Counted from the stretch's first letter, positions 1,967 to 64,000 are shown. The stretch: 64,000 nucleotides of DNA from Oculina patagonica (GCF_052425735.1 NC_135759.1:992001-1056000); one strand, 5' to 3'. Numbers and translations are program-made. Notes: generated by a model from the letters alone, not told the origin.

Positions 1967-4900
1967 ATGGCTTTTACGCTCTCACGAAATAAGGTTCAAA
2001 ACTTAGACGGAACAAACGAAGGGCGCCAACCTGCACGTGAAAGCCTCGGTTCCTTCTTAGAAGCCACTTCCTTACACGGAGCTCGATTTCTGCCAACTGG
2101 GTACGTTATCAGAAGAGTTATTTGGACTCTGGCTCTCGTCTCGTGTTTTGGTTTGTGCATCCATCAAGTTTACGACACGGTTAAAGCTTTTTATGAGCGA
2201 CCTTTCAACACGAAAATAACCACGAAGACAGCGAACGACACCACGGTTATTCCATTTCCTGCAGTGACACTTTGTAATTTCAATTTTGTGAACAAACGAA
2301 AGTTGAAGAAATGTTTTTAAAAGCGTCAACTTTAGCAACGAAGAAATTGATCAGAAACTTAAAACTATGGAAAAGATGATAGCGGGTTCAAAAGATGTCT
2401 TGAGTAACGAATCGCAACAACGCAATCCTGAATTGTTTATCCAAAATTACGGTGGAGTCTCAGAAAACGATAATGTTATTAACACAGTTTATTCCCCGTA
2501 TGGAAGATATGCTGCTTCCAAGTTCGATATTTCAATCTTGCTTTATTAACGGAAGAGCTTGTGGATTCAAGGACTTTACCCCGGTGGCAAATTCAATTTA
2601 TGGTCTGTGCCACACATTCAATTCGGGACGTGATGGACGTCCCTTGATAAATGCCACACTAGCCGGCCAGGCGACGGGCTTGAAGCTGTTGTTAAACATC
2701 GAGAGAGATAGTTATCTGGACAATCCATTAACACCATTCGTTGGTATTGCAGTCCTGGTGCACGATCAGCATACCTTTCCTCTTCATGCAACCGGATAGT
2801 TTTGCCGTTCAGCCTGGTCATCATACTCTCTGCTCGATAAAAAGGAAAAAGGTATGAAGATGATGCCTGCCTCATGTTGTACTGTGCACTTATTTAATTT
2901 AAAAAAAAAAATAAATTAAAAAATGCCATTAATTAAGATGCACAATTCAAACGTTCGAGCCTTGATATTCCCTTCATGTATGCGATGACACGCTAAATCC
3001 GATACACACGTGCGCCTAGCCACTTCATAAATACCGGACATGACCACTGAGCACTTTCCATGGAGGAATTTTAATAATTCCGGGTGATGTTCTCTTTATA
3101 ATGTCAACCCTGTGAATGCGACCGCTTCGGCTTGTTGGCTTACCGCGGCAACTGCTAAATCTCGCAAACGCCCCAGTAAACCTGTAAATTTCAGGAGTAG
3201 CGGTAGGCAAGGAGACACGATTGCATTGCAGGCTGTATATGAAGTCATATTAACTTAATAGTTCAATGTCCAACGGCTTTTTATCAAATGATTGACTTTT
3301 CTTTCACAGATAATGAATTTGCCACTACCATATTCAACAAACTGCTCTAACGAAAACCTGTTCATGTTTCGTAACACTGGATACAAGTACTCCAAGCCGG
3401 CCTGTTTGACGGAATGTCTGAGCGAGTATGTTATCAGAAAATGCGGTTGTCGCCCTGTAGAATATCCCGGTAAGACAATGACCTCCTTAAGAAGCTTCGT
3501 TATAATGTATTAAGCCATTTTTACGATGTGCAATATACATGTACCTTGAAATGGAAGGAAATTTCAAATAGTTAAAAAAAATAAAAAAAACGCCTAAGAG
3601 GTGATTAAACAAGCCGATTAAAGGAAAAAACATGGCTAAAATTGGAAATGGTAGAGACATTACGAACGGCGGACTTGAGAACTGTAGGCCATTTTTTTTT
3701 CAAAAGAGCCAAAAAAGTGCTTACGTGATCTCCTTTGTATTTATAACTGTCCTTCGACCCTATGGTGGATTTAAAATCCGATTTACTAGGGAATCTCCGC
3801 ACCGATCTAGATGACTGGAAGGACTAAACTAAACTAGATGATCTCATGTCTCAACTAAGGGAGACTAACTAATGAAGAGGTAATTTTGCGAAATGGTACT
3901 AAGTGCATGTTTCAGTACGTCGATATATGCAACGTGAAAGTAACGACGTACCTCATCACGGCGTATCTGATTTGGATAGCATGTCGTGGACGATAATCTA
4001 TGCATGCGCTAACACAACTTCATAAATTGTTCCTTAGATCAAACGATTCCACTTTGCGCCCCCAAAGACCTCATACTTTGTGTGGTTCCTGAAACTGGTA
4101 AGTGCAATTTTGCAATTTAGAAAAGAAATAAACCTCGAGTGAGTGCTTTTAGAGCAGGAAATCAAGAGAAGTCATTGGATGAACCACAGTAGCGAAAACT
4201 AGATCAAATGATGGTCGTTCGGTCGGTTGGTTGGTCAATCGGCCGATCGTTCTGCCAGTCTATCCGTTCGTTCGTTGGTCTGTCTGTCTTTCTGTCTGTT
4301 TGTCTGTCGGTCTGCCTGTTTGTCTGTCTATCTGTCTGTCTGTCTGTCAGTCTGTCTGACTGTCTGTCTGCCAGGTGGTCAGTCAGTTAGTAGGTCCGTC
4401 TTCACACCCATCCATCCGTCAGTCGGTCCAGCAGTTGGTCGGTCAGCAGTCAATGAGTCAGTCGTCGGGGTCGATTGATTGATCGGTCAGTCGTATAGAA
4501 GAAAATACATTCACTGATTTCTTCATTCCAATTCAGAATTCATCATCTTAGCTGTCAGTTATTTTTGCAATACATCGTCTTATTTATTTACTCTGTCCTG
4601 TTTCAGAATTGTATTAAATCGTCTCATTTATTTATTTACTTATTCCTCTCTGTTTAGAAATATTTGCTACATCAAAAGAGAAGGACGCCTGTAAGAAGAA
4701 CTGTCAACAGCCTTGCGAGCACACGGAGTACGAAACGTCTTTGTCTAACGCCGGCCTACAAAGGGATGTTTTCATCAAGAAACTAAGTTCATCTCCCAAC
4801 GTTACTGTTGATTTTCCATTTTACAAAAACTTCATGAATATGTCATATTCTGAGAAGAAGGAGTACATAGAGTAAGTCAGTTAAAAAACCCCTGAAGGAT

Positions 4901-5656
4901 TGGGAAGCTTGGTTAAACGATAGTAAAGCGATGTGTCTTTTTATCGTGCTCGAGATCTGATGGTGTAGATACATATTAGTATCCTAGCAGTGTTTTCTTT
5001 TTTTTCTTCCGACAGTGACAACATCGTTTCCTTGGACGTTTATTTTGGAGATCTTAGCTATGATGAGATTGAGCAAACTCCAGTGTTTGAAACATGGACC
5101 TTGATATGTAAGTGACTTTGGCAAGGCCATTTGAGAGAATTCGAAATATTCTGCAGACTCTAGCGACAGAAAAAAATGGAGGAGAAACAGGAAAAAAATG
5201 ACATAATAAAATTAACAATCGAACGAATGAGAATAAAAAAATGAAAGGTAAAGAAGAAGAGTTGTTTCATAACCGAGCCTGAAATGAAGGAAGGAAAGAA
5301 TCAACCAGAAACTGATTAGAAATGTATAAAAAGTCTTGTACATGTAATAACGGCAGAGAAGAAGGTGAATCAAAGACATTATTACTGAGCTTTTGTTGAA
5401 AATTCAAGCGATTGCAAAGAAGGTATAAAAACAATTATTAAGGCTCCAACATGATTTGTATCTACATAATGGAAATAAATAAACAGCTGACTGGATGAAT
5501 CGATGAATGAAAGAACAATCAACCAACTCTGTTATTTTTCTTTCAGCAAATTTGGGTGGAAATTTTGGCCTCTTTCTCGGCATGAGTATTCTCACAGTTC
5601 TAGAATTCATCGACTTCGCCTTTAGAAGAATTTGGTTTATCGTCTGGAAACATTAA
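1967..5656 (+). pseudogene. DEG/ENaC (ASIC-like) channel copy 1, most divergent paralog, with three frameshifts in exon 1
   Basis: Exons 1967-2851, 3310-3469, 4038-4097, 4658-4871, 5016-5107, 5547-5656, all GT-AG. Motifs TSLHGARF, FPAVTLCN, GLCHTFN, CGC, CQQPC, SNLGGNFGLFLGMS. Exon 1 is split over three ORFs (frameshifts near 2315, 2495, 2785). These may be assembly indels. Confidence 0.85.
4210..4495. repeat. Degenerate (TCTG/TCGG)n tetranucleotide microsatellite in intron 3 of copy 1
   Basis: Runs of tctgtctgtctg, gtcggtcgg and tcagtcag. Confidence 0.9.
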
Positions 5657-7053: not shown

Positions 7054-8859
7054 ACAGAACCATTAGAATAATAAAAATAAAAACCCTGCCATGATCAAGA
7101 TTTAAATGTGGCTCAAGTGAAGAGTTGAAAATTACTTTTAAAAGACCCAATGAGAGCAAAACAATCTCCATACAAATAATAGCAATATAATAAAGTCTAC
7201 AGAGGTAATGACTATAACTATAAGACAGTGGGTGAATTATTATGTAGCTTTGTTTATTTATAACAGTTTCCATAGAGACAATAGTAAAAATAAAGGAGCC
7301 TAGTTTTTTAAAATGATATAATTAAATTTCAAATCCCTTAAAAATCTCATAGACAGGATGATATTTTGTTAAAAAAAAATATCTCAAATACAATAGTAAA
7401 CTGGTAAGCTACCAACACTAATTTTTAAGAAAATACCCGTGGGTAAGAACATATGGGATTTACTCATGAAAACATTGCGCCTTAACAGACTTCAATAAAA
7501 GCCGAATTTGCATTTCGGTATCGGCAGGAAAACAAAAGCTACAAAGCTAAACTGATTAAAATGACTCAATTCCTTATTTTAAAATAGACGTTTCGCAGAC
7601 GTCCTAATGTCCTCGATGAAATTTAATTAAAAGAGAAGTGCATTAAATAATTAAGCCTTTTCTGTATAAAGAAAATTTATTACGTTCCTGTGACATGATT
7701 TACATAACAGTAGTCTATTATAAACAACACGTCTGATGCCGGGGTCTGATGATTTCCTACCTTTATCAAAACACGGTTAAAAATGAATTAGTTCTTGAAG
7801 GCAGAACGTCGCCGTGGATAGAAGGGCTTCCCGGTATTAAAAAATTTACTCTCAGCCAAGCACGATTCTCGCCTTCTTTAAAATCCGGTTAAAAAGCAGA
7901 GCGATCCAGTGATGGATTTCAAAAAGCAAAGTGTTGGGATAACTGACCCGTACGAACTCCATCGAAGTAGCGAAGACAACAAAGATAAAAAATCAAGCGC
8001 CGACCATCGTGAAATGGAAGAATTAAAATCCTTCGCACAAGAAACAACACTACATGGGGCTCGGTATTTGTTCGCTGACAACTTCTTCAGAAGACTGTTG
8101 TGGACTTTAGCAGTTGCATCGTGCCTCGGTTATTGCACTTTTCAAGTTTACTCTTGTGTGATTGCATTTAATAAGCGGCCTTTCAACACGAAAATAACAA
8201 CTAACATCAGTACAGATGGCAGCGAGCTTACATTCCCTGCTGTAACTCTGTGCAATCTCAATTCCTTCAGCACTCGCAGATTCAGACAAAAATCTTCATT
8301 TAACAAATCATCAATCGAGAGAAAACTTATAGACATGACCCTTTTGTCAATGGGATCGAAAGAGATATTAAGCGAAGAGTTCAGAAAACGCAATCCAGGA
8401 CTTTTTCGTCGCCCAAATACGACCAACAACAGACAGATGAGCCGAGGCTTTTTCAGTCATCAAATAAACGAAATGATTTTACCAAGTAGCTCTCAGTTCC
8501 AATCTTGCTCCATCAATGGAATGCACTGTGACGCAAGTAACTTTACTAGCTTCCTAAGCCCCATGTTTGGAAAGTGCTACACGTTTAATTCTGCAGAAGG
8601 TGACAAATCATTGCTTCATGCCACATTGGCCGGCCAAAACAGTGGTTTGAAGCTTCGACTTAGTATCGAACGGGACAGCCATTTGCCAAATACAATAAAC
8701 CCCTTTGTAGGGCTTGCAATTTTGATACACGATCAAAAGACATTCCCTATTGCGGAAGAGTTTGGCATTAAAATTCAACCAGGCGTCTCGACCCTTTGTG
8801 CCATAAAAAGAAGAAAGGTGAGTGCAGAAAATTATGTATTATAAATAATCCATTTGCCA

Positions 8860-9089
8860 GCAAATCAACCAATCTACCAGTAAGAAAGCCACTCAATGAG
8901 TCAGCCACCCCAGTCGGCCGGCCAGCCAGCTAGAAAGAAAGACAGACAGACAGACAGACAAACTGACGGACGGACAGACAGACAGCCATCCAGCTAGCCT
9001 ACTTCTAGCCTACTAGCCAACCAGCCAGCCAGCTATAGCTAGCCATGCCACCAAAAAGCCAGCCAGCTATTAGCTAGCCATGCCACCAC

Positions 9090-9130
<41 letters not shown>

Positions 9131-9268
9131 TATTAGCTAGCGATGCCACCAAAAAGCCAGCCAGCTATTAGCTAGCCATGCCACCACCCACCCAGCCAGC
9201 CAGCTATTAGCTAGCCATGCCACCACCCAACCAGCCAGCCAGCTATAGGTAGCTATGCCACCACCAGA
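8860..9268. repeat. (CCAG/GACA)n microsatellite plus ~41-bp minisatellite in intron 1 of copy 2
   Basis: Repeated unit GCCAGCCAGCTATTAGCTAGCCATGCCACCA at 9020-9265. Similar CCAT/CCAG/GGCA tracts occupy intron 1 of most copies. Confidence 0.9.
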
Positions 9269-9950
9269 ATAATTTCGCTTTAGAATGTAACTCTGTTTTA
9301 TAAATATCATATCATTTTCTTGCAGATAATTAACCTGGAACATCCGTATGCGACCAACTGCACAAAAAGATCCCTTGATGTGTTCAACAGCCACTCTTAC
9401 ACGTCCTATACTAAAGAAGCTTGTCTGGTGAAATGTCGCAATGATTACACTATCAAAACCTGCGGCTGTACTCCACCTGAATTTAAAGGTATAAAACAGT
9501 TTTCCCTAACAAGGCTGCATTGCTCACCCAACTAATGATTTCAAGACCTTACAAGGGTTTACCTCGCTGTTAAAAGTTTGTTTTGGAGCTATTTTTTCCT
9601 GCTCCGTATTGTTTAGAGGTCCTTTGTTGTCTTGGTCGTTCTTTGTTTTAGATCACTGGTGAGTTTCACAGGTTTTTACACCGAGGATGAGCCCCTCACA
9701 AAGTTATATTGGGATGTCATGTTTAGCATTTAACTCCCAAAGTTAAACATCGAAGTCGGATACTTAAATAACATGGCCCCTTTTTTCAAAAGAAAAAAAT
9801 CATCCCTTTCTTTGGAGAATTGTACGTATATTCAACCAAAAATCAGTGATTGTACAGTACATGGACGATTCTAATACATCATGCTCCCAAATTTTTTTTT
9901 ACTCCTAGGAGTGGAATGCTATAAAAAACCATAGTATAATAATAATAATT

Positions 9951-10350
9951 AACAATTATTGGATGAGGTTGAGCATGATAGCGATAATTATCAAGGCCAA
10001 AGTTTCTGTTATCTGCCGAAGCCGAAGGCTGAGGCGGATAACAGAAACTGAGGCCTTGATAATTATCGCTATCATGCGAAAACCGAATCCAATAATTGTT
10101 TTATTATGCACATTCCTGAGCTGCACTTGTAAAGACAAGAGCGAACACAAACTTTATTGTTTATATACTTTTATAAGCTTACAACCTTTCGTCCCTTCTG
10201 CATGCATAAAACTATTGTCTGTAGGTATGACGTCACTTCTACATATGTAAAATCTAATGTCTGTAGGTATGACGTAAGAGAAACAGCAAGCAAGAATTAG
10301 CTGCGTGCTTATAGCCAATCAAAATCAAGCTGGTGACACCAATGTATAAT
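9951..10350. mobile_element. Non-autonomous palindromic element (150-bp terminal hairpin) inserted in an (AAT)n tract
   Basis: 9951-10100 is a near-perfect inverted repeat (AACAATTATTGGAT...ATCCAATAATTGTT). The element ends in CAATGTATAAT. A related copy lies at 59897-60439. Confidence 0.7.
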
Positions 10351-11378
10351 AATAATGTTTAATAGACACTCATTGCAGTATAACTGAATTACAGAGTAAA
10401 AAACAAGCTAAGGTATAAATATGAACTATTATAAACAAGCTAGTTCGAGATTAATAGCGAAAAGTGACGAAGTCCTGAGAACGCTTCGTTCTGCAAGACT
10501 TGACGGTGCTACGACTTGTGCCGGATCTTAAGTCGTAGTTATGTACAATCTCCTCACATCGAGGCAAAAGAAAATGAAGAGGGCTATTTACATCCTGAAG
10601 TTTACAGACATACTGCCGGCAAAGATCGATGTTGGCGCCGTTCCCTCAATGAAGTGAGGCCGAGCAGCCGTAATGCCTCCTTGTAGTCGAGGGAAGGACA
10701 AATAATAAACATGGCTCTCTTCTGGACTCTCTCGATATTATTATCCAAAAAGTCAGGAATGTTCTGCCAGACAGGGGCGGCATATTCTAAAATAGGACGC
10801 ACTATTGTAACAAATACTTTGGCTAATGCTACCGGCGTGGCACCACATTGCTTTAGTATCCTTAGGGAAAAGAGTCTTTTGTTCGCTTTTTTTTAAAACA
10901 ATATAGTCTATGTGGTAGTCCCATTTTAAGTCGCTGCTGATGTAAACCCCAAGGAGTTTGTATTTTAAGGTTTGTTCAATTACGTTATTTCCAAGTATAA
11001 TAGGATTAATTACGAAATTATGGTTACTCATAAAAATTGATCAACATTTCGTTGCATTTAGAAGGATTAAGCTTCATCATGTCCTCGTTTGAAAATTCAA
11101 AAATATCGTTGGCAGCAAAGTTAAGCAAGCTTACACTATTTCTAGGGATGATTTCTAAGGCTGTTGTGTCATCGACAAACCTAATTCTAAGGTTCCAATA
11201 GTCATAATAGAGAATAGAATTACTCCCAACTTGGTGCCTTAGGGGATACTTCCCTTAGGGGTCTTCCAATCAGACACAGTGCTCCCGATTCTCACAGCCT
11301 GGGTTCGATTGCTTAGGAAGGCCTTAATCCAATTCACCAAAACGGGGTGCACGTCCAATTTCTCTAATTCCTTTCTAG
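10351..11378 (-). mobile_element. 5'-truncated, degenerate CR1/L2-type LINE reverse-transcriptase fragment in intron 2 of copy 2
   Basis: Minus-strand peptides WIKAFLSNRTQAVRIG, GSIP*GTKLG, RFVDDTT, KLLGVYISSDLKW, RPILEYAAPVW, IERVQKRA, with stops and frameshifts. The 3' end runs into an (ATT)n tail. Absent from the other copies. Confidence 0.9.
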
Positions 11379-11439
11379 TAGCAGGAAGGTGCTCCAGAAT
11401 TAAGATCATACCTTAAACAAGCAATGTGGATGTAACTTT

Positions 11440-11620
11440 TGAGCCTTTACTTGGAAACCAAACGTGACTGTTCGATCGCTATTGAGCATGTCTTTCATGC
11501 ATGTAGTATATTGTACAGTGGACGAAACCTTAGTGCGTGACTATCCAAATATTAAAGCTACTGAGCAGCACTTTCATTTGGTAATGCTTATTATGCTGCA
11601 CATGGTGGTTCTTACTTTAC
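11440..11620. repeat. Degenerate ~95-bp satellite-like unit in intron 2, inherited by copies 2-7
   Basis: GTGGACGAAACCTTAGTGCGTGACTAT...AAAGCTACTGAGCAGCACTTTCAT...GGTGGTTCTTACTT. Homologs near 17350-17570, 24370-24530, 32555-32710, 38570-38720 and 46430-46580. Resembles a common coral interspersed repeat (from memory). Confidence 0.55.
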
Positions 11621-14065
11621 TCAAAATAAAACTGAAGCTAAATGACGGTGCCCCCTTTTGACGAAGTTACTATGACAATTATTCCCGTGCAGTCTAGGGC
11701 TAATATCACGGGATGAAAAAGTTAGACTTTTTCCTTATTTTTTTAGTAGCTAGAAGTAACCACTGTTTTGTTATCCTTTTTCTAGTCGACGCTTCAGTTC
11801 CAATCTGTGCAGCGAACGACACAGTTCTCTGTGTTTACCGATCACATGGTATGTCAATCTTTTCTTTGATAAAACGTGAAGGAGAAGGCATGCAGGTAAA
11901 GCCAAAGCAAAGCGACCACATCCAACCAGTCACAACCAAAGAAATCCATGAACCATTCAGACAATTAGCAGCCTGCGTGCAGTCGTCTCCTTCCATTCTC
12001 GTATTTTGATCGGCCTGTTGAAGCAGAAACAATAAAAATGATGCGAAAAAGATATCAAAAAGGTGTTAACACAATCAAACACTTTGTAAATTCAAGTGCC
12101 ACCGTTTGATTTAGGGCATTTTACTGGCATACCCTCTCAGTCTGACTAATCACTTTTTTCATCTTCAACTTTCCTCACGTGCATATCCCTGTACCCTTGA
12201 ACTAAAATGATATGTATTCTTTTTATGGTCACTTTCCCAAAGCGAAATATAAAATAATTTATCTTTGCAGAAGAGTTTGGCACCTCTAGCAAGAGAAATG
12301 ATTGCGAGAAGGACTGTCCTGAGCCCTGCGAGCAGGTGGAATACAAGACTTCCTTCTCTTACAGTGGACTGGAGAGGGAAGCTCTTTATTGAACATCACA
12401 TGTCTTTGCTTAACGGCAGTGAAATGATATCAGACGATAGAGCAATTTACGAGCCTCTAATGAACATGACGAGAGCTGAGAGGGAGAAATACATAGAGTA
12501 GGTGTTCTTTTGTTGCTTTGATTTGACTACGTTCTAATAATTGACGTGTTCTTCCCCAGATAAAGCAGTCCGGGCGAAAGCTTTGCCTAGGTAGTCATTT
12601 TGCGTTCTTGGGCAAGAATGGTTATTCGCACAATGTAAAAATGCCCAAGTGTAAAATGATACTACAAGAAACTATTATAGCAACCTTAAAAAAAAAAAAT
12701 AGAGATAGCCCGAATTGAAGGTGTGTAGCCGATGCTACGAAAACTGGACTTAGTGCCGGCTAGCTCAGCCATTATGCACCAAAGAGGTTTTACTGTTAAT
12801 ATATTATATTAATGCTTGCAAGGCTACGGGGTCTTTGATGAGTAACGTAGGACATACGTTAGAAACTAAGGTTCAGCTACAAACATATAATTCTGGATCC
12901 ATGTTGTATTTTTACGCAGTGACAACATTGTTTCCTTGGACATCTATTTTGAAGATCTTAGCTACGACATCATTGAGCAGACTCCTTTGTATGAGATCTG
13001 GGCACTAATTGGTTAGTACTACAATTATTGGTTCCCTTTTTGTTTGGTCAAGGGCAGCAATGGAGCAAAGCTCTTCTGTAACCATGTACAATTTACTTTG
13101 ATCATAACTCATGTAATTCTACATTGTCTTTATTGTCATTGTCATTGTCATTATTGTATGACCTTGTCGTTGCAAGCGTTGTTTGGCATTTTTTTAGCAC
13201 ATATTTTTTTTACCTGCTATATGTACAGAAAGAAACCTCAAATAATAGTTTTTTACTAAAGGGGTAGAACCATACAGAGAAAATATTGAAGGATGGCTCA
13301 GATTGTGTGACGATAGGTTAAATAAGTCTTGGACGCGTGTTTGTGTGTACTTCAGTGACAGCTCAGCAAATATTTCCGAAGACGCAGCTTAAAAGCTTTT
13401 GACGTGTTGAGCAGATACGTTGCAGGACGGGGAAATAACTCGGTTAAGCTTTGAGTATCTCATTTGATTGTTTTTATTCACTTTTTGTATAGTGTGCATA
13501 TTTTGGAACTAATTTCTATTTTTTTCCACCAGGAAATCTGGGAGGAACTTTTGGTCTTTTCCTTGGAATAAGTCTTCTGACTGTTCTTGAGTTCCTGGAC
13601 TTTATCGCGGGAAGAATATCTCACCTGTTTCATAAGAACCAGAAAGCAAGAACCGTTAATGTAGAGAACTAAATATCTCAGAGTCAATTGGGATATGTTA
13701 TTGATCATATCATAGCAAAATTTGTGCACAAGAGAATATACACTACAGCCTCATGTATTTGGCAGAAACAAGTTTTTTAACTATATTATTGGTTTTCACG
13801 TAACGTCTTCAGAACTCCAAAATCCAGTATCGCAAGACCTCGGAATTTGTCCTTCACTGGTTATAAGACGTCCATATTTAGTTCGTGTTGATGGGTTAGC
13901 TCGATAGCGTCCGCCGTTTTTAAGATAGAGCATTCTAAATTTCGGAGTTTCACTTCAAACGACATCAAAGATGGCCGCCAGAAGGCTCTAGAGGTTGAAT
14001 TTATTTTTTTTTTTGCGTCGTGACGGGTGCGTGACACTGAACACCTTGAAAACCTTGGTTTTTCT

Positions 14066-15587: not shown

Positions 15588-18500
15588 ATGTTCTTGCCGA
15601 CTTTAAATCCAAGAAAGAAATTACAAGGTGAACAACAGCAAAGTATTGGGATGAATTATCTCAACATACAAGACCCAAGAAACAAGGACATCAAACATAA
15701 AGAATCAAACAGCGACCACGGTGCAATGGACGAATTAAGATTCTTCACACAGGAAACAACTTTACACGGTGTAAGGTTTTTGTTCGCTGGCAGCTTTTTC
15801 AGAAGACTTTTTTGGACGCTTGCAGTTGTAGCGTGCCTTGGTTACTGCAGTTATCAAGTTAGCATCTGTGTGTTTGCATTTAATGAGCGGCCCTTCAACA
15901 CGAAAATAACAACTCATATCAATGCAGATGGTAGCGAGCTTCCTTTCCCTTCTGTAACACTGTGCAATCTCAATTCCTTCAACGCTCGAAGATACAGGCA
16001 ATTCTTTTCAACAACTTCCAACAGAGAGACAATCGAAAAAAAACTCGAAGACATTTCCCTTTTGACAAAAAGGTCGAAAGAGATATTAAACGAAGCCTTC
16101 AAAAAACGCAATCCAGAGCTTTTCGCTCGACAAAAAACAAACAAACATACACAAAAATATCAAGGGCTATTCAGTCATCAATTACAAGAAATGATTTTAC
16201 CAAGAAGCACGCAGTTCGAATCATGCTCCATCAACGGAATGCGCTGCGACGGAAGCAACTTTACAAGCTTCCGAAGTCCCATGTTTGGAAAGTGCTTCAC
16301 GTTTAATTCTGCAGAAGGCAACAAATCATTGTTATATGCTACGTTGGCCGGTCAAAACAGTGGTTTGAAGATTCGACTGAATATTGAACGGGCAGGCTAC
16401 CTGCCAAATACAATAAACCCATTTGTAGGGCTTGCAATTTTGATACACGATCAAAAGACATTTCCTATTGTGGAAGAGTTTGGCATCAAAATTCAACCAG
16501 GCGTGTCTACCCTTTGTGCCATAAAAAGAAGAAAGGTCAGTGCAGAAAAGTTTGCAGTAGAAATGCCTCCATCCATGCACCCATAATCATTCAAACATGA
16601 ATACATGCATTCCTCCATCCATCCACGAATCCAGGTCAGGCAGGCAGGCAGGCAGGCAGGCAATCAGCCAACCAGTGAAAGAGTCACAGCTTATCAGCAA
16701 GCTAATCACCCCGGCTGAGTCAACAAGCTTACCGGCCATGCCTTTCTTGATCCAACCAGCTCGAACGAGTTTACCAACTATGTTTGACATTGAAGGGTAC
16801 CTGTGTTGTGTTTGTATAAAGGTGCTTTACTTTTTTAAATCGTTTTCTTGCAGATAATTAACCTGGAACATCCGTTTGCGACCAACTGCACAAGAAGATC
16901 CCTTGATGTGTTCAACAGCCACTCTTACACTGCCTATACTAAAGCAGCTTGTCTGTTGAAATGTCGGAATGATTACACTATCAAAACCTGCGGCTGTACT
17001 CCACCTGAATTTAAAGGTATGACTAAATTTAAAGCTTTAGTACATGCCATTTTTCCAAAGAAGTATAAATAAATAAAAGTGGAGATAGTAAAGGTGGATG
17101 CCGTTCTTGAGGACTCGGAAGCGCCTCCCTTGCCCTGAAAAGTTATATGCATTCATCCGAAATCCTTTCATTGAACCATATCTTTCAATACATGATAGAG
17201 TATGATACAATATCCTCCCGAAAGAATACTATCACTCCTAAAGGAATGGTAAATGCTACTGAAGTAGAATAAACTGCTGGGAGTCATTGTCATAGCTTGA
17301 CCTTGAAACTATCTTGTAGTCTCTTGGTGAAACCTTCCCTAATGTAACTATTTAGATAAAACAATTTGAGTAGTCCATGGTCTTCTGTTTAGTGTTCTGT
17401 ACAAGGTGTTTTTAACTCCTAAGTCTGTGGATCAACCGTAGTGTAGGACCATTTCACTGAACGTTATGCGAAAGTATTTTCATTTGGTTTTAATTTATCT
17501 ATACAGTCAACTCTCGCTCCCCTTTTTTTCTGGGTTTGGGGGTATGCTATGCAAGGTGGTTCTTACTTCAAAATCTTCCAGAACTCATCCTGAAGCTATG
17601 TGACAGTACAACATTTAAGAAAAGACACTTTGACAATTATTTTTCTGGCAATCTTAAGCTCTGTTTTTTTCAGGGCTGATCTTACTTGGATTATGTTTGA
17701 TGAAGGTAAGAATTAACCATTGTTTTCACTTGTTTTGTAGCTGACGCTTCAGTTCCTATCTGCGCACCTAATGACACAGTTCTATGTGTTTACCGATCAT
17801 ATGGTATGTCAATCTTTTCTTTCATAAACTGTGGAGTATACACTTGAACCGACGTAAAGCCAGACGAAAGCGACCATTTCTGAGCAATCAACTAAAGGAA
17901 TTAACGTTAGAAATCAATCAGAAATCAGCCAAATGAAGGTCAATTTTTTATTTACTTCCGAGTGGTCAAAACATAGATCACCTTTTCGATAAGTTTTTTA
18001 GTAGCGTTTCACATTTGTTAAGTTTTATCCAATTCAGGCTTTCAGCTGTAGTTTTAAAGCTTCAATAAACTATCCATCTATCTATCTAATGCATGATTTT
18101 TTAAAGGCAATTTTAGAGTGCCTTCGAGTTTAAACACGTATTGGACAATTGTTTTTCCTTTTGAATTTAATGGATGTCTGTTTGATCAGTTTTTCTTGAT
18201 ATGCCTAATCTAATCCAGTATATCTTATCTGTCTCCAGAAGTCACATTTTTCATTCTAACTTTTCGCGTACCACCCTTTCCTTTCGACTAAAATGATATT
18301 TCGCATTTTTGTCATATTCAATTATCCCAAATCTATCTTATCGAATCTTAACTAAATAAAATAACTTGCTATGGCAGAAAAGTTTGGCGCTTCTAGCAAG
18401 AAGAATGAATGCGAGAAGGACTGTCCGGAGCCCTGTGAGCAAGTGGAATACAAGACTTCCTTCTCTTACAGCGGACTACAAAGAGAAGCTCTCATTGAAC

Positions 18501-19896
18501 AACTGATGTCTTTGCTTAACGGCACTGAGGAGTTATCAGCGGATCAAGCGATCTACAAACCTCTTTTGGACATGACGAGAGCTGAGAGGGAGAAATATAT
18601 AGAGTAATTATTATTTGGTTGTTTTCATTTAAATCCGTTCATAATGATTGACGTGTTGGTTCCCAAATTGAGTGGTTGGGTTAGAGGCTTGCTTTGTGTC
18701 AACACTTTGCGTCCTTTGGTTAGAATCTTCACTCTCACAAAGCCGATATTCCCACTGGCGTTCAATGACTCAACCAGGAACCGGAACTATTAGAACAACC
18801 TAACAATCCTTTGAGGGGAATGCGGGCGGGCAGAGGGTAGGACCTGGGATGGTCTATTCTTCCATCTGTAAGACTAGCTGATGCTAGCAGATAATGACTG
18901 GACGCAGCGTTGGTTGGCTTTGCCAATAGCAACCGAAGACGCTTTACTCTTATAGAACCTATGAAACTTGAAAAAGTACAACTTAGTAGTACTTATTTAT
19001 ATATTAATACTTGTTTGGCAATATGGGCATCTTAAGACAAGGTTATACAAACATGTAATTCTGGATCCATAATGCATTTTTCCGCAGTGACAACATTGTT
19101 TCTTTGGACATCTATTTTGAAGATTTAAGTTACGACATCATTGAGCAGACTCCTTTGTATGAGATCTGGGCACTGATTGGTTAGTACTACAATTGTCTGT
19201 TTATCTTTTGAAGTCAAAGGACAGAAATGAAGGAAAGCCCTTACTTATCCAAGCACAGCTTACTTTGGCCATAACTTTCGTAATTCTGCAGGCACCACAT
19301 TGTCATGAAGTCCACTGTCCTTGTTTTTGCAAATGTAGTTGACTACGACGTATTTCTGCCATTTTTTGGCAAACATTAAAAAAGCAGTATCATGGGTATC
19401 ACTTCATAAAGTAAGAAGTCAGAAGAAATATTTACATTAATGGAAACACAAAATAATGGTCTAGCTTTGTTTAAAATGACTTTAACAGTCCACTAAAGTA
19501 ACAAAAGAATTGTAATCATGAGTAATACAGGCATGTGACTTTAAACAAAAATTGAAAACGTCTGAAGTAATTAACACAATACCTCCCCCCTTCCCCCTAA
19601 AAAATTGGGACTGACTGCGAACAATGAAATTGAAAAATTAAGTCTAATGTTTTTTTCAAAAACGGCACAATCTTTGACAAACATAGTTTAATTCTCTGCT
19701 AGTTACTTTTTGAAAGTGTGTGTATTGTTTGAAAAAATCATCTGTCTTTTAAACAGGAAACTTGGGAGGAACTTTTGGTGTTTTCCTCGGAATGAGTCTT
19801 CTCACTTTGCTTGAGTTCTTGGACTTCATCCTTAGAAGAATCTCTCACTTGTTTCATAGGAAACGGAAAACAAAAGCCGTTAATTTAGTGAACTAA
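15588..19896 (+). CDS. DEG/ENaC (ASIC-like, amiloride-sensitive family) channel subunit copy 3, intact, ~543 aa
   Basis: join(15588-16535,16854-17016,17741-17803,18378-18603,19088-19179,19757-19896) = 1632 nt, in frame, GT-AG. TTLHG, TM1, FPSVTLCN, GKCFTFN, 10 thumb Cys, GNLGGTFGVFLGMS. The start could be ATG 15651. Confidence 0.93.
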
Positions 19897-30781: not shown

Positions 30782-30865
30782 TACATGTATGCATCATGCA
30801 TCCATGCATCCATGCACCCATGCCTGCCTGCATGCATGCGTGCATGCATGCATCCATCTATCCAT

Positions 30866-39800: not shown

Positions 39801-40773
39801 TCATTAAAGAGAAAGTAACAGTAAAACCTCTTCCGAGCCTAATAGCACATTACAGCTTGTTCCTCAGGATAGGCTGGTTTACAAACATGTAATTCTAGAT
39901 CCATGTTGTACTTTTCCGCAGCGACAACATTGTTTCCTTGGACATCTACTTTGAAGATCTAAGCTACGACATCATTGAGCAGACTCCTTTGTATGAGATC
40001 TGGGCACTGATTGGTTAGTACTGCAATTGTTTCATTTGTTCATCCTTTTAACATGTCAAAGGGCAGAATGAAAGGTAACTTTTCTAATTGGCTGTATTGT
40101 CCTTATTGCGAAGTCCTTTTGTCTTGTTCGTAAAAGCGTCTTTCCCAGCACATATTTTATCCATGGTTGATTTCAGGCTTAATTTCTTACTTGAAAGAAA
40201 CTTTAAATAATAATAATTGACTTTAAATAGTAATAAATGACTAAAGTGCATGGGAAATATAGACAAGATAAAGATGACTAAGACAGCTCATCGACAGGTT
40301 TTGGACACGTTTTTGCGTGCATTTGGCAAAAATGATCTCTACTAACATTTTAATTAAGCTCTTGTCGTGTTGAGCGAATAGATTGCTTAATGGGGAGATA
40401 TCTCAGTTGAACCACCCTTCTGGCGGCCGGTTTGGAGAAAAAGAAGACAATAACGCTACCCCTCCCCCCTAAGCAACTTTGAATGACTGCGAACAACGGC
40501 ATTTAAAAATCTAGGTCAACCTTTTTCCAAAAATGTACCATGCATGACTTAGACTTTTTGACTATGACTTTTTTATTAGTCACTTTTTGTCCGTTTGTGT
40601 ATATTAGAACTAATTTGTTCTCTTTTCCATCAGGAAACTTGGGAGGAACTTTTGGCCTTTTCCTGGGAATGAGTCTTCTGACTGTTCTCGAGTTCCTGGA
40701 CTTTATCTGCAGGAAGATCTCTCATTTGTGTCATTATAACCGGAAAGCAAGAACCGTTAATGTAGAGAACTGA
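36892..40773 (+). CDS. DEG/ENaC channel subunit copy 6, intact, ~522 aa
   Basis: join(36892-37776,38104-38266,38894-38956,39408-39633,39922-40013,40634-40773) = 1569 nt in frame, all motifs present. Confidence 0.93.
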
Positions 40774-43342: not shown

Positions 43343-46300
43343 ATGCAAGAAGATAAATTACAGGGTGAACAACAGCAAAGTGCTGGGATGAATGATCCAA
43401 ACGTACACGAACCAAGAACCAAAGGAATCAAAGATAAAGAATCCGATTCCGACCACTTAACAATGCAAGGAATAAGCTCCTTCGCACAGGAAACAACTCT
43501 ACACGGTGCTAAGTTTTTGTTCGCTGACAGCTTTTTCAGAAGACTGTTTTGGACTTTGGCAATGGTCGCGTGCCTCGGTTACTGCAGTTATCAAGTTAGC
43601 ATCTGTGTGATTGCATTTAAAAAGCGGCCCTTTAACACGAAAATAGCATCTCACATCAGTGCTGATGGTAACGAGCTTACCTTCCCTGCTGTAACACTGT
43701 GTAATCTCAATGCCTTCAACGCTCGAAGATACAGGCGATTATTTTCGAGACCTTCTAACATAGAGAAAATCGAAAGGAAGCTTGAAGACATTTCTCTATT
43801 GTCAAGAAGGTCTAAAGAGATTTTAAACGAAGACTTCAAAAAACGCAATCCAGAGCTGTTTGCTCGCCTGAAAACGACCAACGATTTAAACAAATACCAA
43901 GGGCTGCTGAGTCATCAGTTAGAAGAGATGTTTTTACCAAGTAGCTCGCAGTTCGAATCATGCTCCATCAATGGAAAACACTGCGACGCAAATAACTTTA
44001 CCAGCTACCTAAGCTCCATATTTGGAAAGTGCTTCACGTTTAATTCTGCAGAAGGCGACAATTCACTGTTATTTGCTACGTTGGCCGGTCAAAACAGTGG
44101 TTTGAAGATTCGACTGAATATTGAAAGAGATGGCTATCTGCCAAATACTGTAATCCCCTTTGTAGGGCTTGCAATTCTGATACACGATCAAAAAACATTT
44201 CCTATCGTGGAAGAGTTTGGCATCAAAATTCAACCAGGCGTATCTACCCTTTGTGCCATAAAAAGAAGAAAGGTAACGAGTGCAGAAAGCTTTGATAATA
44301 CAGTGAATATGCGCGACTAGGAACCCAACATTTAAGAACCTGTTAGGCTAAAAATGGCAAATAAAATTCCTCTATTTGTTAGAAACTATTAAGCCTTAGA
44401 TTTGGAAAAAAGTTCTTTTTCTTCTAAAACTGATTTAAAATGTTTACTTTGTGAAATAAGTTTGGACAAATCATTACTCTGTATATGAAAATTAAGGTTA
44501 AAAGCTGTTGAAAATATGACCTAACGTTTTCGATCATGATCAATTTGATCATCATCAGAGTGAAAATTTGCATCAAGCTGGGTGTTTTTATAGTTTAGGC
44601 TTTATCCGGTACGTAATGCCAGTTTCCATTGGGAACAAGGTTAGGTCAAATGATTGGACTAAATGTTTGTTAAGTTCAGGATGGAAACGTGCGATGTAAA
44701 CGCTTTTTTTATTCTCCTTTTTATCCATGAATTAGTGGTGGTTAGAACGTCCCACGAGAACTTGTGAATTGAGTGATTTTAAATGTGTTTAGCTGGCTTC
44801 GACTGCCCATTAACATCTGAATGCTCGTTGACACGAACCTCCAGATTGTGTGTGCTGTTTCGCCAATATATGTTTGTCCACAAATACATGTGCCTTTCTA
44901 AATGACGTGAGACGGATGAATGTTTTTGTCTTTTGGTTTGAAATTTGATTTAATCTTGCGCGTTTGCCAAATGATAAAGAAGTTGAAATTCCATTTGGAG
45001 TATGTTTTTAGTTTCTTTATGTATCAGTATATTTTACTTTCCACTTCATTTTTGCTGCAGAATGGTCTGACAGATTCCGATTTTAGTACTTTCATCAAAC
45101 CAATGGACAGGAATTATTGTCTCCACACCTCTTGAGTTTTCAAACTCATAAATATCTTGATTTACAAATTTAGCAGGATATCTAGATTTGATGAACGATT
45201 GTTTGATGACTTTAACTTAACTTCTTCTTTCCAATTAGTGGCTATTCGTTTTGCGAGATGTGAGGCTCCTAGAATGCTAAAATCTACATCTACATTTATT
45301 AAGTTGATAACATCGTTTAAGACATCACATCAACTATAAAAAAAAAGTACAAAATAAAAACAAAATGCCAAATGATAAAAATGAAGCGAAGAGTAAAAGA
45401 TTCATAAAGAAACAGTAAGCACATACATCAAATAGAATTTCAACTTCTTTATCATTTGGCAAACACGCAAGATTGAATCAATTTTTAAACCAAAAGACAA
45501 AAACATTCATCCGTCTCACGTCATTTACAAAGGCACATGTATTTGTGGACAAACATATATTGGCGAAAAAGCACACAACCTGGACTAGGTTCTTGTCAAT
45601 GACCATTCAGATGTTAATGGGGAGTCGGAGGCAGCTAAACACATTAAGAATCACCCAAATCACAAGTTCTCGTGGGACGTTCTAACCACCGCTTATTCAT
45701 GGATGAATAGGAGAATAAAAAAAAGCGTTTTACATCGCAGCCAAGTTACAATCCAGAACTTAACAAACAAGTCCAATCACTTGACCTAACCTTGTTCCCC
45801 ATGGGAACAGGCATTACGTAACGGATTGGGTTGTTTGTATAAGGTTGTTTTACTGTTATCAAATCACTTTCTTGCAGATAATTAACCTGGAACACCCGTA
45901 TGCGACCAACTGCACAAGAAGATCCCTTGATGTGTTCAACAGCCATTCTTACACCGCCTATACGAAAGCAGCTTGTCTGTTGAAATGTCGGAATGACTTC
46001 ACTATCAAAACCTGCGGCTGTACTCCACCTAAATTTAAAGGTATGACTTCGATAAAAAGCTAGTCAATGTCATTTAGGAAAGTGCAAAATAAAAGTGGAC
46101 GCCGTTCTCTAGGACTTAGAAATGTCTGTTAAAATGTAATATTTATCTCTCACAACGAGTCTCATGTCCAGACAATTTGTAGTTATACACCCAAATATCT
46201 TGGCCCTCTTTTCCCGGAAACCCCACTCTTGCCCTGAAATGCGAAATCCAGAATCCTCTAATTGTACAGTATCTTGCAATACATAGTAGTTTATGATGCA

Positions 46301-48607
46301 ATATGGTCTCAAAAGAATTCCTGCAACGCTTCGAGAGGAATTGTTTTAACTCGTGGGTAGGAAAAACCTGCTGGGAGACGAACTCATAGCATGAGTTAGT
46401 CTCTGAATTAAACCTAAATATAACTTTTAATTTTAGATGAAGCTATTAATGAAGTAGTTCTTTTATGTTTTTTTGTTAATTATGCTGTAAAAGTTGGGTT
46501 TAACTTGTAAGTCTGTGGATAATACCTAGTGTTGGACCATTACATTTAAGGTTAAAGGGCAAAGTGGTTCTTTCATCAAAATCTTGAAATCATCCTAAAG
46601 CTCTGCGATAGTGCAACATTTAAGTGAAGTCACTTTGACAATTATTCTTGTAGCAACCCCAAACTTTGAATTTTAGCAGAGCTGATGTCCCGTAATTGAA
46701 GATGTAGCTTGAGTCTTTTTTTATATTATGTTACTAGATGGAAGCTAGAATTGACCATTGTCTTTACTTTTTTATAGCCGACGCTTCAGTTCCGATCTGT
46801 GCGCCGAATGACACAGTTCTCTGTGTTTTCCGATCCTATGGTAAGTCAACCTATTCTTTAATAAAATAAGGGGAGGACGCGTTAAAACGGACACAAATCC
46901 TAATAATAGCAACTATATCTGAACAACTACTGCTGATGAAGAAATTACTATTGTGAACCATAAAGAAATCATCCAAATGATAACGAGTTTACTTTTTACT
47001 TCCAATAGTCGAAAGATATACAGGTTTTCCCTGGCCGGTTAGAAAACACGCCACGATTTTGTAAAGGCCTTCAATTTTAAACAAGTATTGGGCACATATT
47101 TCTCCTTTTGAATTTGATGGATGCTTGATCAGTTCAACATGGCATGTGTAACCTAATGCAGTATATCTTTTCTGTCTCCAGAAGTCACATTTATTATTCT
47201 TACCTCTGCCTTCCAACCCTTTCCTTTTGACTAAAATGATATTTTGCTTTTTTGTTTATTCATATTCCTCACGTTTATCTTATATATAAAATAATTTGCT
47301 ACTGCAGAAGAGTTTGGCACCTCCAGCAAGAGAAAAGAATGCGAGAAGGACTGTCCGGAGCCCTGTGAGCAAGTGGAATACAAGACTTCCTTCTCTTACA
47401 GTGGTCTGCAAAGGGAAGCTTTCATTGAACCTCTTCTGTCTTTTCTCAACGGCACTGAGAAGTTACCAGTTGATCGAGCGATCTATAAACCTCTTTTAAA
47501 CATGACGAGAGCTGAGAGGGAGAAATACATAGAGTAGGTGTTACTTGGCTGTCTTGATTTAACGCCGTTCATAGTGATTAACTTATAGGTCTACAGGTTG
47601 AGAGGTCCGGGTTAGCTAGAGGCTTATACCGTGGTTATTATTTTAGGTTCTTGGGCAAGATGTGTTACTCTCACAGTGCGCATGACTCAAACGGGGACTT
47701 ATTGAAGTAGCGTAACAGTCTTTTGAGGGGGATGCAGGGTTGAGGGGGTGGGGGGGGGGGTGGGGGTAAGACCTGGCATGGACTATTCCCCCATCAGAAG
47801 GGCTATTTGATGCTAGCTGCAGCAGAACAAAAACAGAACCCATGAAACTAGAAAAAGTGCAACTTTACTACTTGTTTTAATATTAATTTTTGTTTGTCCA
47901 TAATTTTGTAAGCATCTTAGGATCTTGGGACAGGGTTTATAATTATACAAACATGTAATTCTGGATTCATGTTGCATTTTTCCGCAGTGACAACATTGTC
48001 TCTTTGGACATCTATTTTGAAGATCTTAGCTATGATATTATTGAGCAGACTCCTTTGTATGAGATCTGGGCACTGATTGGTTAGTATAGTACTGCAATTT
48101 ATATCAAGGAGCAGAAATGAGCAGAAATTTTTCTCACCAAATACAACATGCTGTGATCTATGTATTTCTGTACATTGGTATTATTGTGAAACCCTGCATA
48201 GGACTTGTTGCAAGTTTTGTTTGGTTACCGCGTATTTGCGGCGTTTTGTAGCACAGATATTGTAATCTCGATTAATTTCTTACCTCGTATATAAAGACAA
48301 GCCTCAAAACAATAATTAACTAAGGTGAGAAAACAAGAGGCCAAATTGATGATGATAAAAATTGGGACAGCCCCTGAAATTTGAAAGTTAGGCCCAATTT
48401 TTTTTCAAAATGCGCCATTCATAACTTTGCACGTTTAATTTTCTAATTCTTTTTCTTTTTCCACCAGGAAACTTGGGAGGTACCTTTGGTCTCTTCCTGG
48501 GAATGAGTCTTCTCACTCTTCTTGAGTTCCTGGACTTTATCTCGTGCAGAATTACTTATTTGTTGCTTGGAAAACAAAAACTAACACCCGTTAAAGCGGA
48601 GAACTGA
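43343..48607 (+). CDS. DEG/ENaC channel subunit copy 7, intact, ~537 aa
   Basis: join(43343-44272,45878-46040,46778-46840,47308-47533,47988-48079,48468-48607) = 1614 nt in frame. TM2 GNLGGTFGLFLGMSLLTLLEF. Confidence 0.93.
44301..45825. mobile_element. Left part of the Tc1/pogo MITE plus two oppositely oriented Penelope-like GIY-YIG fragments in intron 1 of copy 7
   Basis: TA|CAGTGAATATGCGCG at 44301. PLE on - (~44490-45280) and on + (~45378-45825: HPSHVIYKGTCICGQTYIGE...AKHIKNHPNHKFSWDVL...PELNKQVQS). Right TIR deleted. Confidence 0.85.
47590..47830 (+). mobile_element. Ancient SINE-like relic in intron 4, homologous in copies 2-8
   Basis: GGTCCGGGTT...GTTCTTGGGCAAGA...ACTCTCACAGTGC...ATGGACTA.TCCC, resembling tRNA-derived SINEs with a TTGGGCAAG core. 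Homologs at ~12550-12790, 18660-18950, 33720-34010 and 55950-56250. Confidence 0.45.
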
Positions 48608-61876: not shown

Positions 61877-63610
61877 GTAAGTACACAGAAATTATGCTTT
61901 ACTAAGAATCCATCTATCACTCATCCATTCATCCATCCATCCCGCCCTCTCTCCCTCCGTCCGTCTGTCCGACCAGCCAGACAGCCAGCCAGTAACCTAT
62001 CAAAACAACCAGTTATTCGACCAGCCAGCCTCAGCCGGCCAGCCGTAATCCGACAGCCAGCAAGCATACAGCAACTGACTTAAGAGCAAGCCTGCAGCCA
62101 CTCGCTTGCTGCGAGTGGGTGCCTGGCTTATTTTATTCACCTCGCATTTTATTATGATTGAATTTTTAATTTTCAGCAGTCCAGGAGTCAATGGATTTGA
62201 AATTTTCTTTTATTTAAAATTCGTTGCGTAAGAAAATATAAAAATTTATTTCAAACATTACGCCCGCTTTGGCGTAATGGTCGTGAAGCAAATCTTTCAA
62301 AAACGAGAACTTCTGAAGTTATGGAAAGGGCTGAAGTGTTTTGTAATATTTTTGCGCTAACAGGTTCTGAAAACCGATACCTAATATAAAAATCTAATAA
62401 AAGAAGAACCAATCTTCGTAAAAATAATAATGAAATGCAATCAAAACATAGCTTATGACTTATTATTATTTCAGTAGGTGACTTAAACCTGTCACTTTTA
62501 TGCAGTTTTGTTCTCTAAGAATTGTCAGTGTTCAAAACTTGAGGCAACTAGTATTTTTTTGGCTTTTGAAATAATTGTTTTTATTCTCCAAATCCATAAT
62601 AATATTTGAACAAAATTGTCTCGTATTCAACAGCGAAGTGATAAGCCACGGTTTATAATTTTAATACAACGATAAGAAAATTTAATAGAGGACGATGGCG
62701 TTTCTCGTGTTTGAGTTTCGTACATTGTTCAGTCAGATTTATTTTGAATTAAGAAGACATGCAAGAACAGACTTCCAGTAGTAATGACAAACATGATAAA
62801 AAGTGAGTTTACATTTCTATATCAGAAAGGACAACAAAGCTACAAAGCCACGCTGATTGTAAAGACTTCATTTGCAATCTTGACAAGTTTATTTCAATTA
62901 TTTATTCAACTTTGAAGTGAAAGACCTCAAAATAATAAACACCAAGTAGGTATTTCTTTATGTGAAGGTAAATACAGCGATACCCCTATATAAAGAAGTG
63001 TCAAGGGACTGGAAAAATATGTTTACGGGTGCTGGTTAGAAGTGCATGGCTCGTTCTAACGTCGTCGTGGGAAAACGGCCAGCTGAAGAACATCGTTTAT
63101 AATGCTGGGGACATTATTATCATGGGGTTCGTTATGTCAGTTTCAAAAGCTACAGTAATTGTAAAGAACTCATTTCCTATTTAAGCATGTTTGGCAACTA
63201 CCCTGAGGGCTAAGGTGAATTTTAATTAACAATATAACCCTTTCTACTATAAGCAACATCATCATTTAAAAAAAAAGTGACATAAAAAAACATGACATCT
63301 GGTGGTTTCTTACAATCTAAAGACGATTTCAATCAGTCAGCTGATCAAAGGCACCAAGGATATAAAGGTCTACCAATTTTTGACGATATCAAAAAACCTT
63401 CTGAACCGAAAAAGATTCTGGCCCGCTTTATGAAAATGACTCGAATTTAAATTACGTGTTGATTTTAACCAGACAGAAAGTGACCCATACGGACACGATC
63501 CACGGAGCAACTCTAGACTTTTAAAAGACATTGCTGGTTTCGCCATGGCTACCAAGGTCCACTGATTATAAAACGTTTTTGAAAATCAATAATCAAGCAA
63601 GTTCCTCGTC

Positions 63611-64000
63611 ATGAAATCGCATGGTGGCCAAATAATGGCTTTTACACAGAGAAGTGCGATGACCAACGAACCAAACGCACACGATCCAAGAAGCAAAGAC
63701 ATCAAAGATGAAGACTCGAACGCCGACAATGGTGAAATGGAAAAATTTAAGTCTTTCACACAGGACACAACTTTACACGGTGCCAGATTTTTGTTCGCTG
63801 ACAACTGTTTCAGAAGACTGTTATGGACTGTGGCAGTTGTCGCATGCCTCGGTTACTGTGGTTACCAAGTTTGCACATGTGTGAATGAATTTTACAAGCG
63901 GCCCTTCAACACGAAAATAACAACACACATCGGTAAAGAAAGCAGCGAGCTTCTCTTCCCAGCTGTAACACTGTGCAATCTCAATGCCTTCAACGCTCGA
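63611..64000 (+). CDS. DEG/ENaC copy 11, 5' part of exon 1 (runs off window)
   Basis: Open frame MKSHGGQIMAFTQ...FTQDTTLHGARFLFADNCFRRLLWTVAVVACLGYCGYQV...RPFNTKIT...FPAVTLCNLNAFNAR; alternative ATG at 63635. Confidence 0.88.
   Translation, partial: MKSHGGQIMAFTQRSAMTNEPNAHDPRSKDIKDEDSNADNGEMEKFKSFTQDTTLHGARFLFADNCFRRLLWTVAVVACLGYCGYQVCTCVNEFYKRPFNTKITTHIGKESSELLFPAVTLCNLNAFNAR

Follow-up and report, generated by a model that had tools for sequence, protein, structure and literature searches.

A tandem cluster of DEG/ENaC channel genes in the stony coral Oculina patagonica, probably shaped by unit duplication, sequence exchange, and copy decay

We analyzed a window of DNA, by which we mean the whole stretch of 64,000 nucleotides (nt) considered here, from the stony coral Oculina patagonica (GCF_052425735.1 NC_135759.1:992001-1056000), located on a 46.5-Mb chromosome-scale contig. 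The plus strand of the window carries a tandem cluster of genes for channel subunits of the DEG/ENaC superfamily (positions 1967-64000). Mapping by tblastn, splice-site transfer, and translation revealed eleven head-to-tail copies on the same strand (Pfam ASC), designated c1 to c11. We regard this, with high confidence, as a genuine tandem DEG/ENaC cluster, which grew by duplication of a unit of roughly 7 kb together with its introns and intergenic DNA, and whose copies have exchanged sequence through recombination or gene conversion and in part decayed by frameshift, deletion, or truncation. Judging from the family, the products would form trimeric cation channels, either homomeric or heteromeric, that open in response to an extracellular stimulus, for which protons, Ca2+ removal, and a peptide are among the candidates. 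The cluster is real yet fairly ordinary and is publicly annotated already: the public O. patagonica proteins for the region (ACROYT_G004360 to G004368) bear hypothetical or ASIC-like names. What is new here is descriptive: the anatomy of the cluster, with pseudogenes and relics that lack annotation, the conservation of its head, c5 as a mosaic, and the link to NeNaC27/28 of the sea anemone Nematostella vectensis.

The window has a GC content of ~0.37 and a eukaryotic composition, and its plus strand shows open reading frames (ORFs) of roughly 300 codons each, spaced by ~7 kb. The intact copies are six-exon genes encoding 522-543 amino acids, open from ATG to stop, in which exon 1 comprises ~300 codons and exons 2-6 measure 163, 63, 226, 92, and 140 nt, lengths that are conserved across the copies. 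We fixed the junctions of c3 by an exhaustive GT/AG search against the public protein P0004; DNA alignments with c3 then gave those of the other copies. All junctions in the mapped copies are GT-AG, and the models of c3, c4, c7, and c8 are exactly the public proteins P0004, P0003, P0134, and P0007, respectively. Exon 1 alone matches Pfam PF00858 with E-values of 1.5e-44 to 3.5e-44 (~152-153 bits against a cut-off of 23.6), and all homologs carry PF00858. Self-similarity covers 67% of the window, including introns and spacers, which indicates that whole units of ~7 kb were duplicated. Because of the Pfam ASC match at E 1e-44, the 67% self-match, and the GT-AG borders at all splice sites, the array is not a product of chance.

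The eleven copies comprise five intact genes (c3, c4, c6, c7, and c8), two frameshifted ones (c1 and c2), one without the second transmembrane segment, TM2 (c5), two reduced to exon 1 (c9 and c10), and one incomplete at the window end (c11). Five of the eleven are thus disabled. Our own mapping reproduced this tally, which had been put forward in the original prediction from the sequence, with the state of c9 as an exon-1-only copy uncertain due to assembly gaps.

Among the intact genes, c3 (15588-19896, 543 aa; exons 15588-16535, 16854-17016, 17741-17803, 18378-18603, 19088-19179, and 19757-19896) corresponds to P0004 (ACROYT_G004363) residue for residue. Copy c4 (21931-26505, 523 aa; exons 21931-22818, 23246-23408, 24701-24763, 25128-25353, 25668-25759, and 26366-26505) corresponds to P0003 (G004364). 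Copy c6 encodes 522 residues (36892-40773; exons 36892-37776, 38104-38266, 38894-38956, 39408-39633, 39922-40013, and 40634-40773), with GT-AG junctions and free of internal stops. The two remaining intact genes are c7 (43343-48607, 537 aa; exons 43343-44272, 45878-46040, 46778-46840, 47308-47533, 47988-48079, and 48468-48607), identical to P0134 (G004367), and c8 (51871-56987, 532 aa; exons 51871-52785, 53105-53267, 54824-54886, 55665-55890, 56320-56411, and 56848-56987), identical to P0007 (G004368). One assembly gap falls within intron 1 of c4 (22873-23053), with the GT donor before it and the AG acceptor after it, and another within intron 3 of c8 (55381-55509). Both are harmless to the coding sequence, as the models spanning them equal the public proteins exactly.

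The disabled copies, all on the plus strand as well, display lesions of very different extent. At the head of the cluster, c1 (1967-5653) is a pseudogene of a different DEG/ENaC subfamily with ~50% identity to the array genes. Its exon 1 is broken by three frameshifts into four frame segments (1967-2317, 2328-2498, 2500-2796, and 2801-2854), and its later exons are open (3307-3480; 4657-5106, comprising two exons and a short intron; 5546-5653). Copy c2 (7912-13672; exons 7912-8817, 9326-9488, 11786-11848, 12271-12497, 12920-13011, and 13533-13672, GT-AG) bears one extra T in exon 4 near position 12386 (227 instead of 226 nt), shifting the frame; its public annotation, P0010 (G004360), is cut off at 417 residues. 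In c5 (28900-34265; exons 28900-29832, 31832-31994, 32902-32964, 33439-33664, and 34174-34265), exons 1-5 are intact, and unrelated DNA has taken the place of the exon-6 acceptor and of the TM2-coding segment (GNLGG...GMS). All that is left of exon 6 is its final ~75 nt (~34703-34777), a remnant 96% identical to c3, and a scan of positions 34266-36892, between c5 and c6, found no TM2-coding motif.

Toward the 3' end of the window, c9 (58424-59307) is a dead exon 1 that carries an in-frame stop besides two frameshifts and has lost ~35 and 9 nt through deletions. No exons 2-6 of c9 were detected by tblastn in the sequenced DNA up to position 60957, but two assembly gaps (59341-59490 and 59507-59641) begin 34 nt past the exon-1 donor and could hide these exons. 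Copy c10 likewise consists of exon 1 (60961-61876) with an intact donor and a 1-nt insertion near position 61294, outside a homopolymer run; tblastn found no exons 2-6 in the gap-free stretch before c11. The start of c11 (~63632-64000) runs off the window, and positions 63659-64000 are 100% identical to residues 1-114 of P0011, a 523-residue protein recorded as the window's own. The original prediction had the array continue past the window end, which is borne out for c11 itself.

Beyond the plain duplication of units, the copies have exchanged sequence. Exon 1 of c5 groups with c7 (support 100/99), whereas its exons 2-5 group with c3 (87/86), which makes c5 a mosaic copy. Likewise, c2 diverges most from the other copies in exon 1, yet its exon 2 is 96% identical to that of c3 and its exon 4 is closest to c8. 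As the nearest neighbor shifts along the gene, recombination or gene conversion has acted alongside birth and death. The birth-and-death scheme originally proposed is thus borne out by intact genes standing beside recent and old pseudogenes, though not in its pure form: the mosaic c5 and the exon-dependent neighbors of c2 disagree with copies evolving independently with little concerted evolution.

The intact copies share 74-91% amino-acid identity, with a synonymous divergence (dS) of 0.22-0.71 and a ratio of nonsynonymous to synonymous divergence (dN/dS, or w) of 0.19-0.29, as estimated by the Nei-Gojobori method pairwise and in sliding windows of 30 codons. This dS range and the widely differing intron lengths (318-2297 nt) identify the copies as true paralogs, not haplotypes. 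The intact copies are under purifying selection. The protein encoded by exon 5, the strand leading into TM2, is invariant, with only synonymous differences among the copies. The ratio of nonsynonymous to synonymous differences (pN/pS) is 0.02-0.25 in the palm, thumb, wrist, and pore and reaches ~1 only in the cytoplasmic N- and C-termini. The extracellular peaks of 0.70 (residues 121-150) and 0.44 (residues 181-210) fall in the helical finger region of the structural model described below, and no extracellular 30-codon window exceeds a pN/pS of 1, all being ≤0.70.

The disabled copies c2, c5, and c10 have dN/dS values as low as those of the intact copies. Copy c2 is still constrained downstream of its frameshift (w 0.19-0.31), as is exon 1 of c10 against the intact copies (w 0.22-0.33). 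The lesions of these three copies are therefore young, polymorphic, or due to errors in sequencing, whereas c1 and c9 are old wrecks.

In a tree of the exon-1 products, c2-c11 belong to a single clade of 40 sequences with good support, to which a Desmophyllum pertusum protein is sister. Within it, c3-c7 form a group with P0001, whose sole outside sister is P0008, encoded on an ENA contig (L001) taken to be from another coral. Copies c8, c9, and c10 form a group of their own, the partner of c2 is P0013, and c11 is isolated among sequences taken to be from other corals; c2, c8-c10, and c11 all lie outside c3-c7, within a polytomy. Copy c1 belongs to a separate clade with Acropora proteins. Contig L001 carries an intact c1 ortholog 7 kb upstream of a c3-like gene, and c1 is 68.6% identical to this intact ORF heading the cluster there. 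On the D. pertusum scaffold MU826362.1 (L003), a c1-type gene is followed by two array-type genes, and a further contig (L002) holds several copies on the same strand. Because L001 and D. pertusum share the layout of a c1-type gene followed by array genes and L002 is also tandem, the cluster and its c1-type head are ancestral to several stony corals, and c1 in Oculina is a unitary pseudogene of the ancestral cluster head. It is the c3-c7 burst alone that seems confined to the Oculina lineage. The synteny check suggested with the original prediction therefore divides its claim of lineage specificity: the claim fits the c3-c7 burst, which appears not to be shared, and fails for the cluster itself, which is old and has the same layout in D. 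pertusum and the other coral contig. A family member is also transcribed and spliced in another coral, as implied by an uninterrupted 533-residue ORF of the family on a 1856-nt Logan contig (L004).

Several points weigh against this account of the cluster. The true copy number is uncertain, since c9 is flanked by gaps and products identical to c9 or similar to c7 lie on unplaced contigs. The RefSeq fragment P0048 (XP_078356488.1, "partial") is 100% identical to exon 1 of c9 and derives from an unplaced 8.4-kb contig of the same species, a location that suggests redundancy or an unsettled assembly around c9. Gene conversion can mimic a species-specific clade, leaving the timing of the c3-c7 burst uncertain, and most of the comparison corals are ENA or Logan contigs whose coral origin is presumed. 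The single-base lesions of c2 and c10, residing in constrained sequence, could be very recent, polymorphic, or assembly errors. Separately, we noticed that P0001, a 316-residue exon-1-type product, is encoded on an unplaced 5.7-kb contig. Its identity is 91% with c7 and 89% with c5, and it could represent one more array copy, as yet unplaced.

As for the encoded proteins, the original prediction of bona fide DEG/ENaC subunits agrees with Pfam PF00858, phmmer, and structure prediction alike. Searches by phmmer matched ASIC2/ASIC1 structures with an E-value of 5e-49, in the sequence order ASIC2/ASIC1, ENaC, ASIC5, and FaNaC, where the FaNaC structures match at E 6e-28. The AlphaFold model of c3 (predicted local distance difference test, pLDDT, 87.8; predicted template modeling score, pTM, 0.80) has helices at residues 70-100 and 493-531 and a β-rich ectodomain. 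Foldseek aligned this model with human and chicken ASIC1a and human ASIC2a at template modeling (TM) scores of 0.74-0.79, normalized by target; FaNaC ranks next. The cysteines of the extracellular domain are fully or almost fully conserved. All five intact copies contain LHG, FP(S/A)VT(L/I)CN, a glycine at the degenerin position, and the TM2 sequence GNLGGTFG(L/V)FLG-M-S...LLEFLDF; four of them share one TM2 pore motif, from which c3 departs at one residue. In c3 the pore signature is encoded at positions 19757-19830, and in the other copies by the corresponding part of exon 6. Membership of the predicted products in the DEG/ENaC superfamily is secure.

To place the family, an exhaustive HMMER search was run over 1.8 billion representatives, of which the best 150 were considered. 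Sequence identity falls from 77%, within the family itself, straight to 35%, where the next full-length matches are an Actinostola protein and a Nematostella cluster containing the TM2 string of NeNaC28 (PMC9822975, Supplementary Data 1). We identified the nearest Nematostella relatives by this exact TM2 string match together with our own tree, in which a hexacoral clade (100% support in the Shimodaira-Hasegawa-like approximate likelihood ratio test, SH-aLRT) joins the sea-anemone proteins to a scleractinian clade (99%). The latter contains three subfamilies, represented by O. patagonica G005002, the c1-like genes, and the family of the window. By this placement, the window family is a scleractinian expansion of a hexacoral subfamily. 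A word-indexed search with the full-length protein returned only scleractinians and three stray matches. On the phylogeny called for by the original prediction, our tree yields NeNaC27/28-like proteins as the nearest Nematostella relatives, with amphioxus ASIC-like proteins outside, and HyNaCs do not occur among the best 150 representatives.

Despite the structural matches, membership in the ASIC subfamily is not supported, given the hexacoral-only clade, with amphioxus ASIC-like proteins elsewhere in the tree. ASIC membership is likewise unsupported by the sequence motifs, as the selectivity filter reads G-M-S and not G-A-S, and the segment before TM2 reads GNLGG and not GDIGG. The public names "acid-sensing ion channel-like" are automatic. 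The G-M-S filter is common to NeNaC27/28 and the Actinostola relative and is therefore a trait of the hexacoral subfamily, not one specific to the array.

What the multiplication of these genes accomplishes can be read in several ways. The copies could represent functionally redundant amplification, with the same gating throughout and differences mainly in regulation or in the cytoplasmic tails, a serious possibility that falls somewhat short of probable. The strong constraint on the palm, thumb, wrist, and pore compared with termini near a pN/pS of 1, the pore motif shared by four of the five intact copies, and the invariant exon-5 product agree with such redundancy, as does the estimate that tandem duplicates make up ~30% of coral genes (Noel et al., 2023, PMC10236652). 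However, the intact copies differ at 9-26% of their residues, with part of this divergence concentrated in the finger region, so that functional differences are conceivable, and the copies have been kept under selection for a dS of up to 0.7.

The original prediction compared the array with chemoreceptor clusters and envisaged a ligand-sensing repertoire with diversified binding surfaces and many heterotrimers, which we consider rather unlikely. Tandem duplication, pseudogenes, and a lineage-specific burst do occur together (11 copies, five of them disabled, and the c3-c7 clade), with the qualification that the cluster head and several lineages are common to other corals. The finger region contributes to ligand sites in other DEG/ENaCs, and it is the most variable extracellular part of these proteins (pN/pS of 0.70 and 0.44 at its two peaks). 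Hydra HyNaCs indeed form peptide-gated heterotrimers (PMC9822975). However, the pairwise and sliding-window estimates show no sign of the diversifying selection that the chemoreceptor analogy calls for in the extracellular domain: extracellular pN/pS never exceeds 1, and the overall dN/dS is as low as stated above. Moreover, there are only five to six intact copies, sequence exchange homogenizes them, and their nearest characterized relatives are not peptide-gated channels. A chemoreceptor-like, lineage-specific repertoire goes beyond the evidence because of extracellular purifying selection, the age of the cluster, and the sequence exchange.

A more specific proposal, which we hold to be unlikely, combines several of these features: the array would provide a scleractinian set of subunits, co-orthologous to NeNaC27/28 and equipped with the unusual G-M-S filter, that form several heteromers gated by an extracellular cue peculiar to corals, for instance a neuropeptide or a signal carried by pH or ions, the 3' exon-1 units being remnants of alternative first exons that diversified the ligand-facing finger.

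On its own, the idea that c9, c10, and c11 are present or former alternative first exons, with their own promoters and one shared set of exons 2-6, seems more doubtful still. Vertebrate ASIC1a/1b and ASIC2a/2b use alternative first exons. In the window, units of promoter plus exon 1 occur in triplicate, their GT donors intact and exons 2-6 missing between them, and exon 1 of c10 is still constrained, as described above. A similar arrangement is found at L002:10013-19402 (ENA ERZ25067868), where P0039, an intact exon-1-only copy, and a frameshifted, degenerate exon 1 precede a single set of exons 2-6. On the other hand, c9 is thoroughly dead, the frameshift in c10 lies outside a homopolymer run, and the gaps past c9 could hide exons of its own. 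Finally, that the copies are assembly artefacts, as uncollapsed haplotypes or mis-joined contigs, is highly improbable and was rejected: the four N gaps in the window and the c9-identical fragment on the unplaced 8.4-kb contig would fit such an origin, but the pairwise dS values and differing intron lengths far exceed allelic divergence, related corals have an equal tandem layout, and at most the c9 segment is affected.

The preferred interpretation, a tandem cluster grown by unit duplication and remodeled by exchange and decay, illustrates how these three processes shape the ion-channel repertoires of corals. It adds an example to two published generalizations, the lineage-specific diversification of cnidarian DEG/ENaCs and the pervasive tandem duplication in corals, and as it stands, the cluster opens no new question. 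Should coral-specific ligand-gated heteromeric channels or a mechanism of alternative first exons prove true, either would merit more attention. The five or six intact paralogs and the dated pseudogenes, drawn from a hexacoral DEG/ENaC subfamily, would make a convenient panel for the gating of cnidarian channels outside HyNaC and NeNaC2.

Channel genes and simple repeats are the sole content that we found in the window; Pfam searches of the minus-strand ORFs of 120-136 residues and Rfam searches returned no matches. An inverted fragment of ~115-145 nt from the 5' part of exon 4 lies on the minus strand at positions 57469-57615 (67-77% protein identity by tblastn), ~500 nt 3' of the c8 stop codon. 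Microsatellites of the AGCC, GTCT, and ATCC types and composite repeats, 35-98 nt in length, occur in the introns (9015-9265, 4278-4370, 31272-31345, and 32085-32436), and a 175-nt unit is repeated twice in intron 2 of c5 with 98% identity. Repeats of the AGCC type give rise to spurious long ORFs and perhaps account for the intronic position of the assembly gaps.

Tandem clusters with same-strand copies of mixed age have been described in coral genomes (PMC10236652), like the array described here. That study stresses immune and disease-resistance families, and its main text makes no mention of amiloride, sodium channels, or ion channels. As anticipated by the original prediction, DEG/ENaCs are known to be "greatly expanded and diversified" in Cnidaria, where lineage-specific diversification has been stressed (Aguilar-Camacho et al., 2023, PMC9822975). 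By that study's count, Nematostella has 29 such genes, Stylophora 26, and Pocillopora 21; its dataset includes Stylophora members of the present family (Stylophorapistillata13259, which is P0069, and the c1-like 15983). The HyNaCs of Hydra, the ppk channels of Drosophila, and the degenerins of C. elegans belong to the same superfamily and have undergone the same kind of lineage-specific multiplication as the window family. However, peptide gating and heteromers have been shown for the HyNaCs and are putative for the window family. The case of NeNaC2 indicates that proton sensitivity has arisen outside the ASICs (PMC9822975), so the window family could be proton-sensitive as well.

The vertebrate ASIC1a and ASIC2a are the best matches among solved structures in both sequence and fold. 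They share with the window family the HG motif, FPAVTxCN, the cysteine pattern, the glycine at the degenerin position, and LTxLE in TM2. However, the identity is only ~25-30%, the filter and pre-TM2 motifs differ as noted above, and the amphioxus ASIC-like proteins lie outside the hexacoral clade.

NeNaC27 and NeNaC28 from N. vectensis are, together with the Actinostola protein, the nearest non-coral relatives, united with the coral proteins in the one hexacoral clade. Because the main text of PMC9822975, in which 20 of the 29 NeNaCs were studied for expression, does not mention NeNaC27/28, these nearest relatives in a model organism offer no functional lead. Identity to the coral family is only ~35%, and the latter forms a separate scleractinian radiation of three subfamilies. 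Nevertheless, the two groups have in common the G-M-S filter and the LIGN(I/L)GG motif preceding TM2. The Nematostella cluster of P0144 (clustered at 90% identity) holds eight sequences, six of which, some being isoforms, map to one 16.1-Mb chromosome, which suggests that the sea anemone has undergone a recent local expansion in parallel. NeNaC27/28 thus comprise several near-identical paralogs on one chromosome, much as the copies multiply in the coral array.

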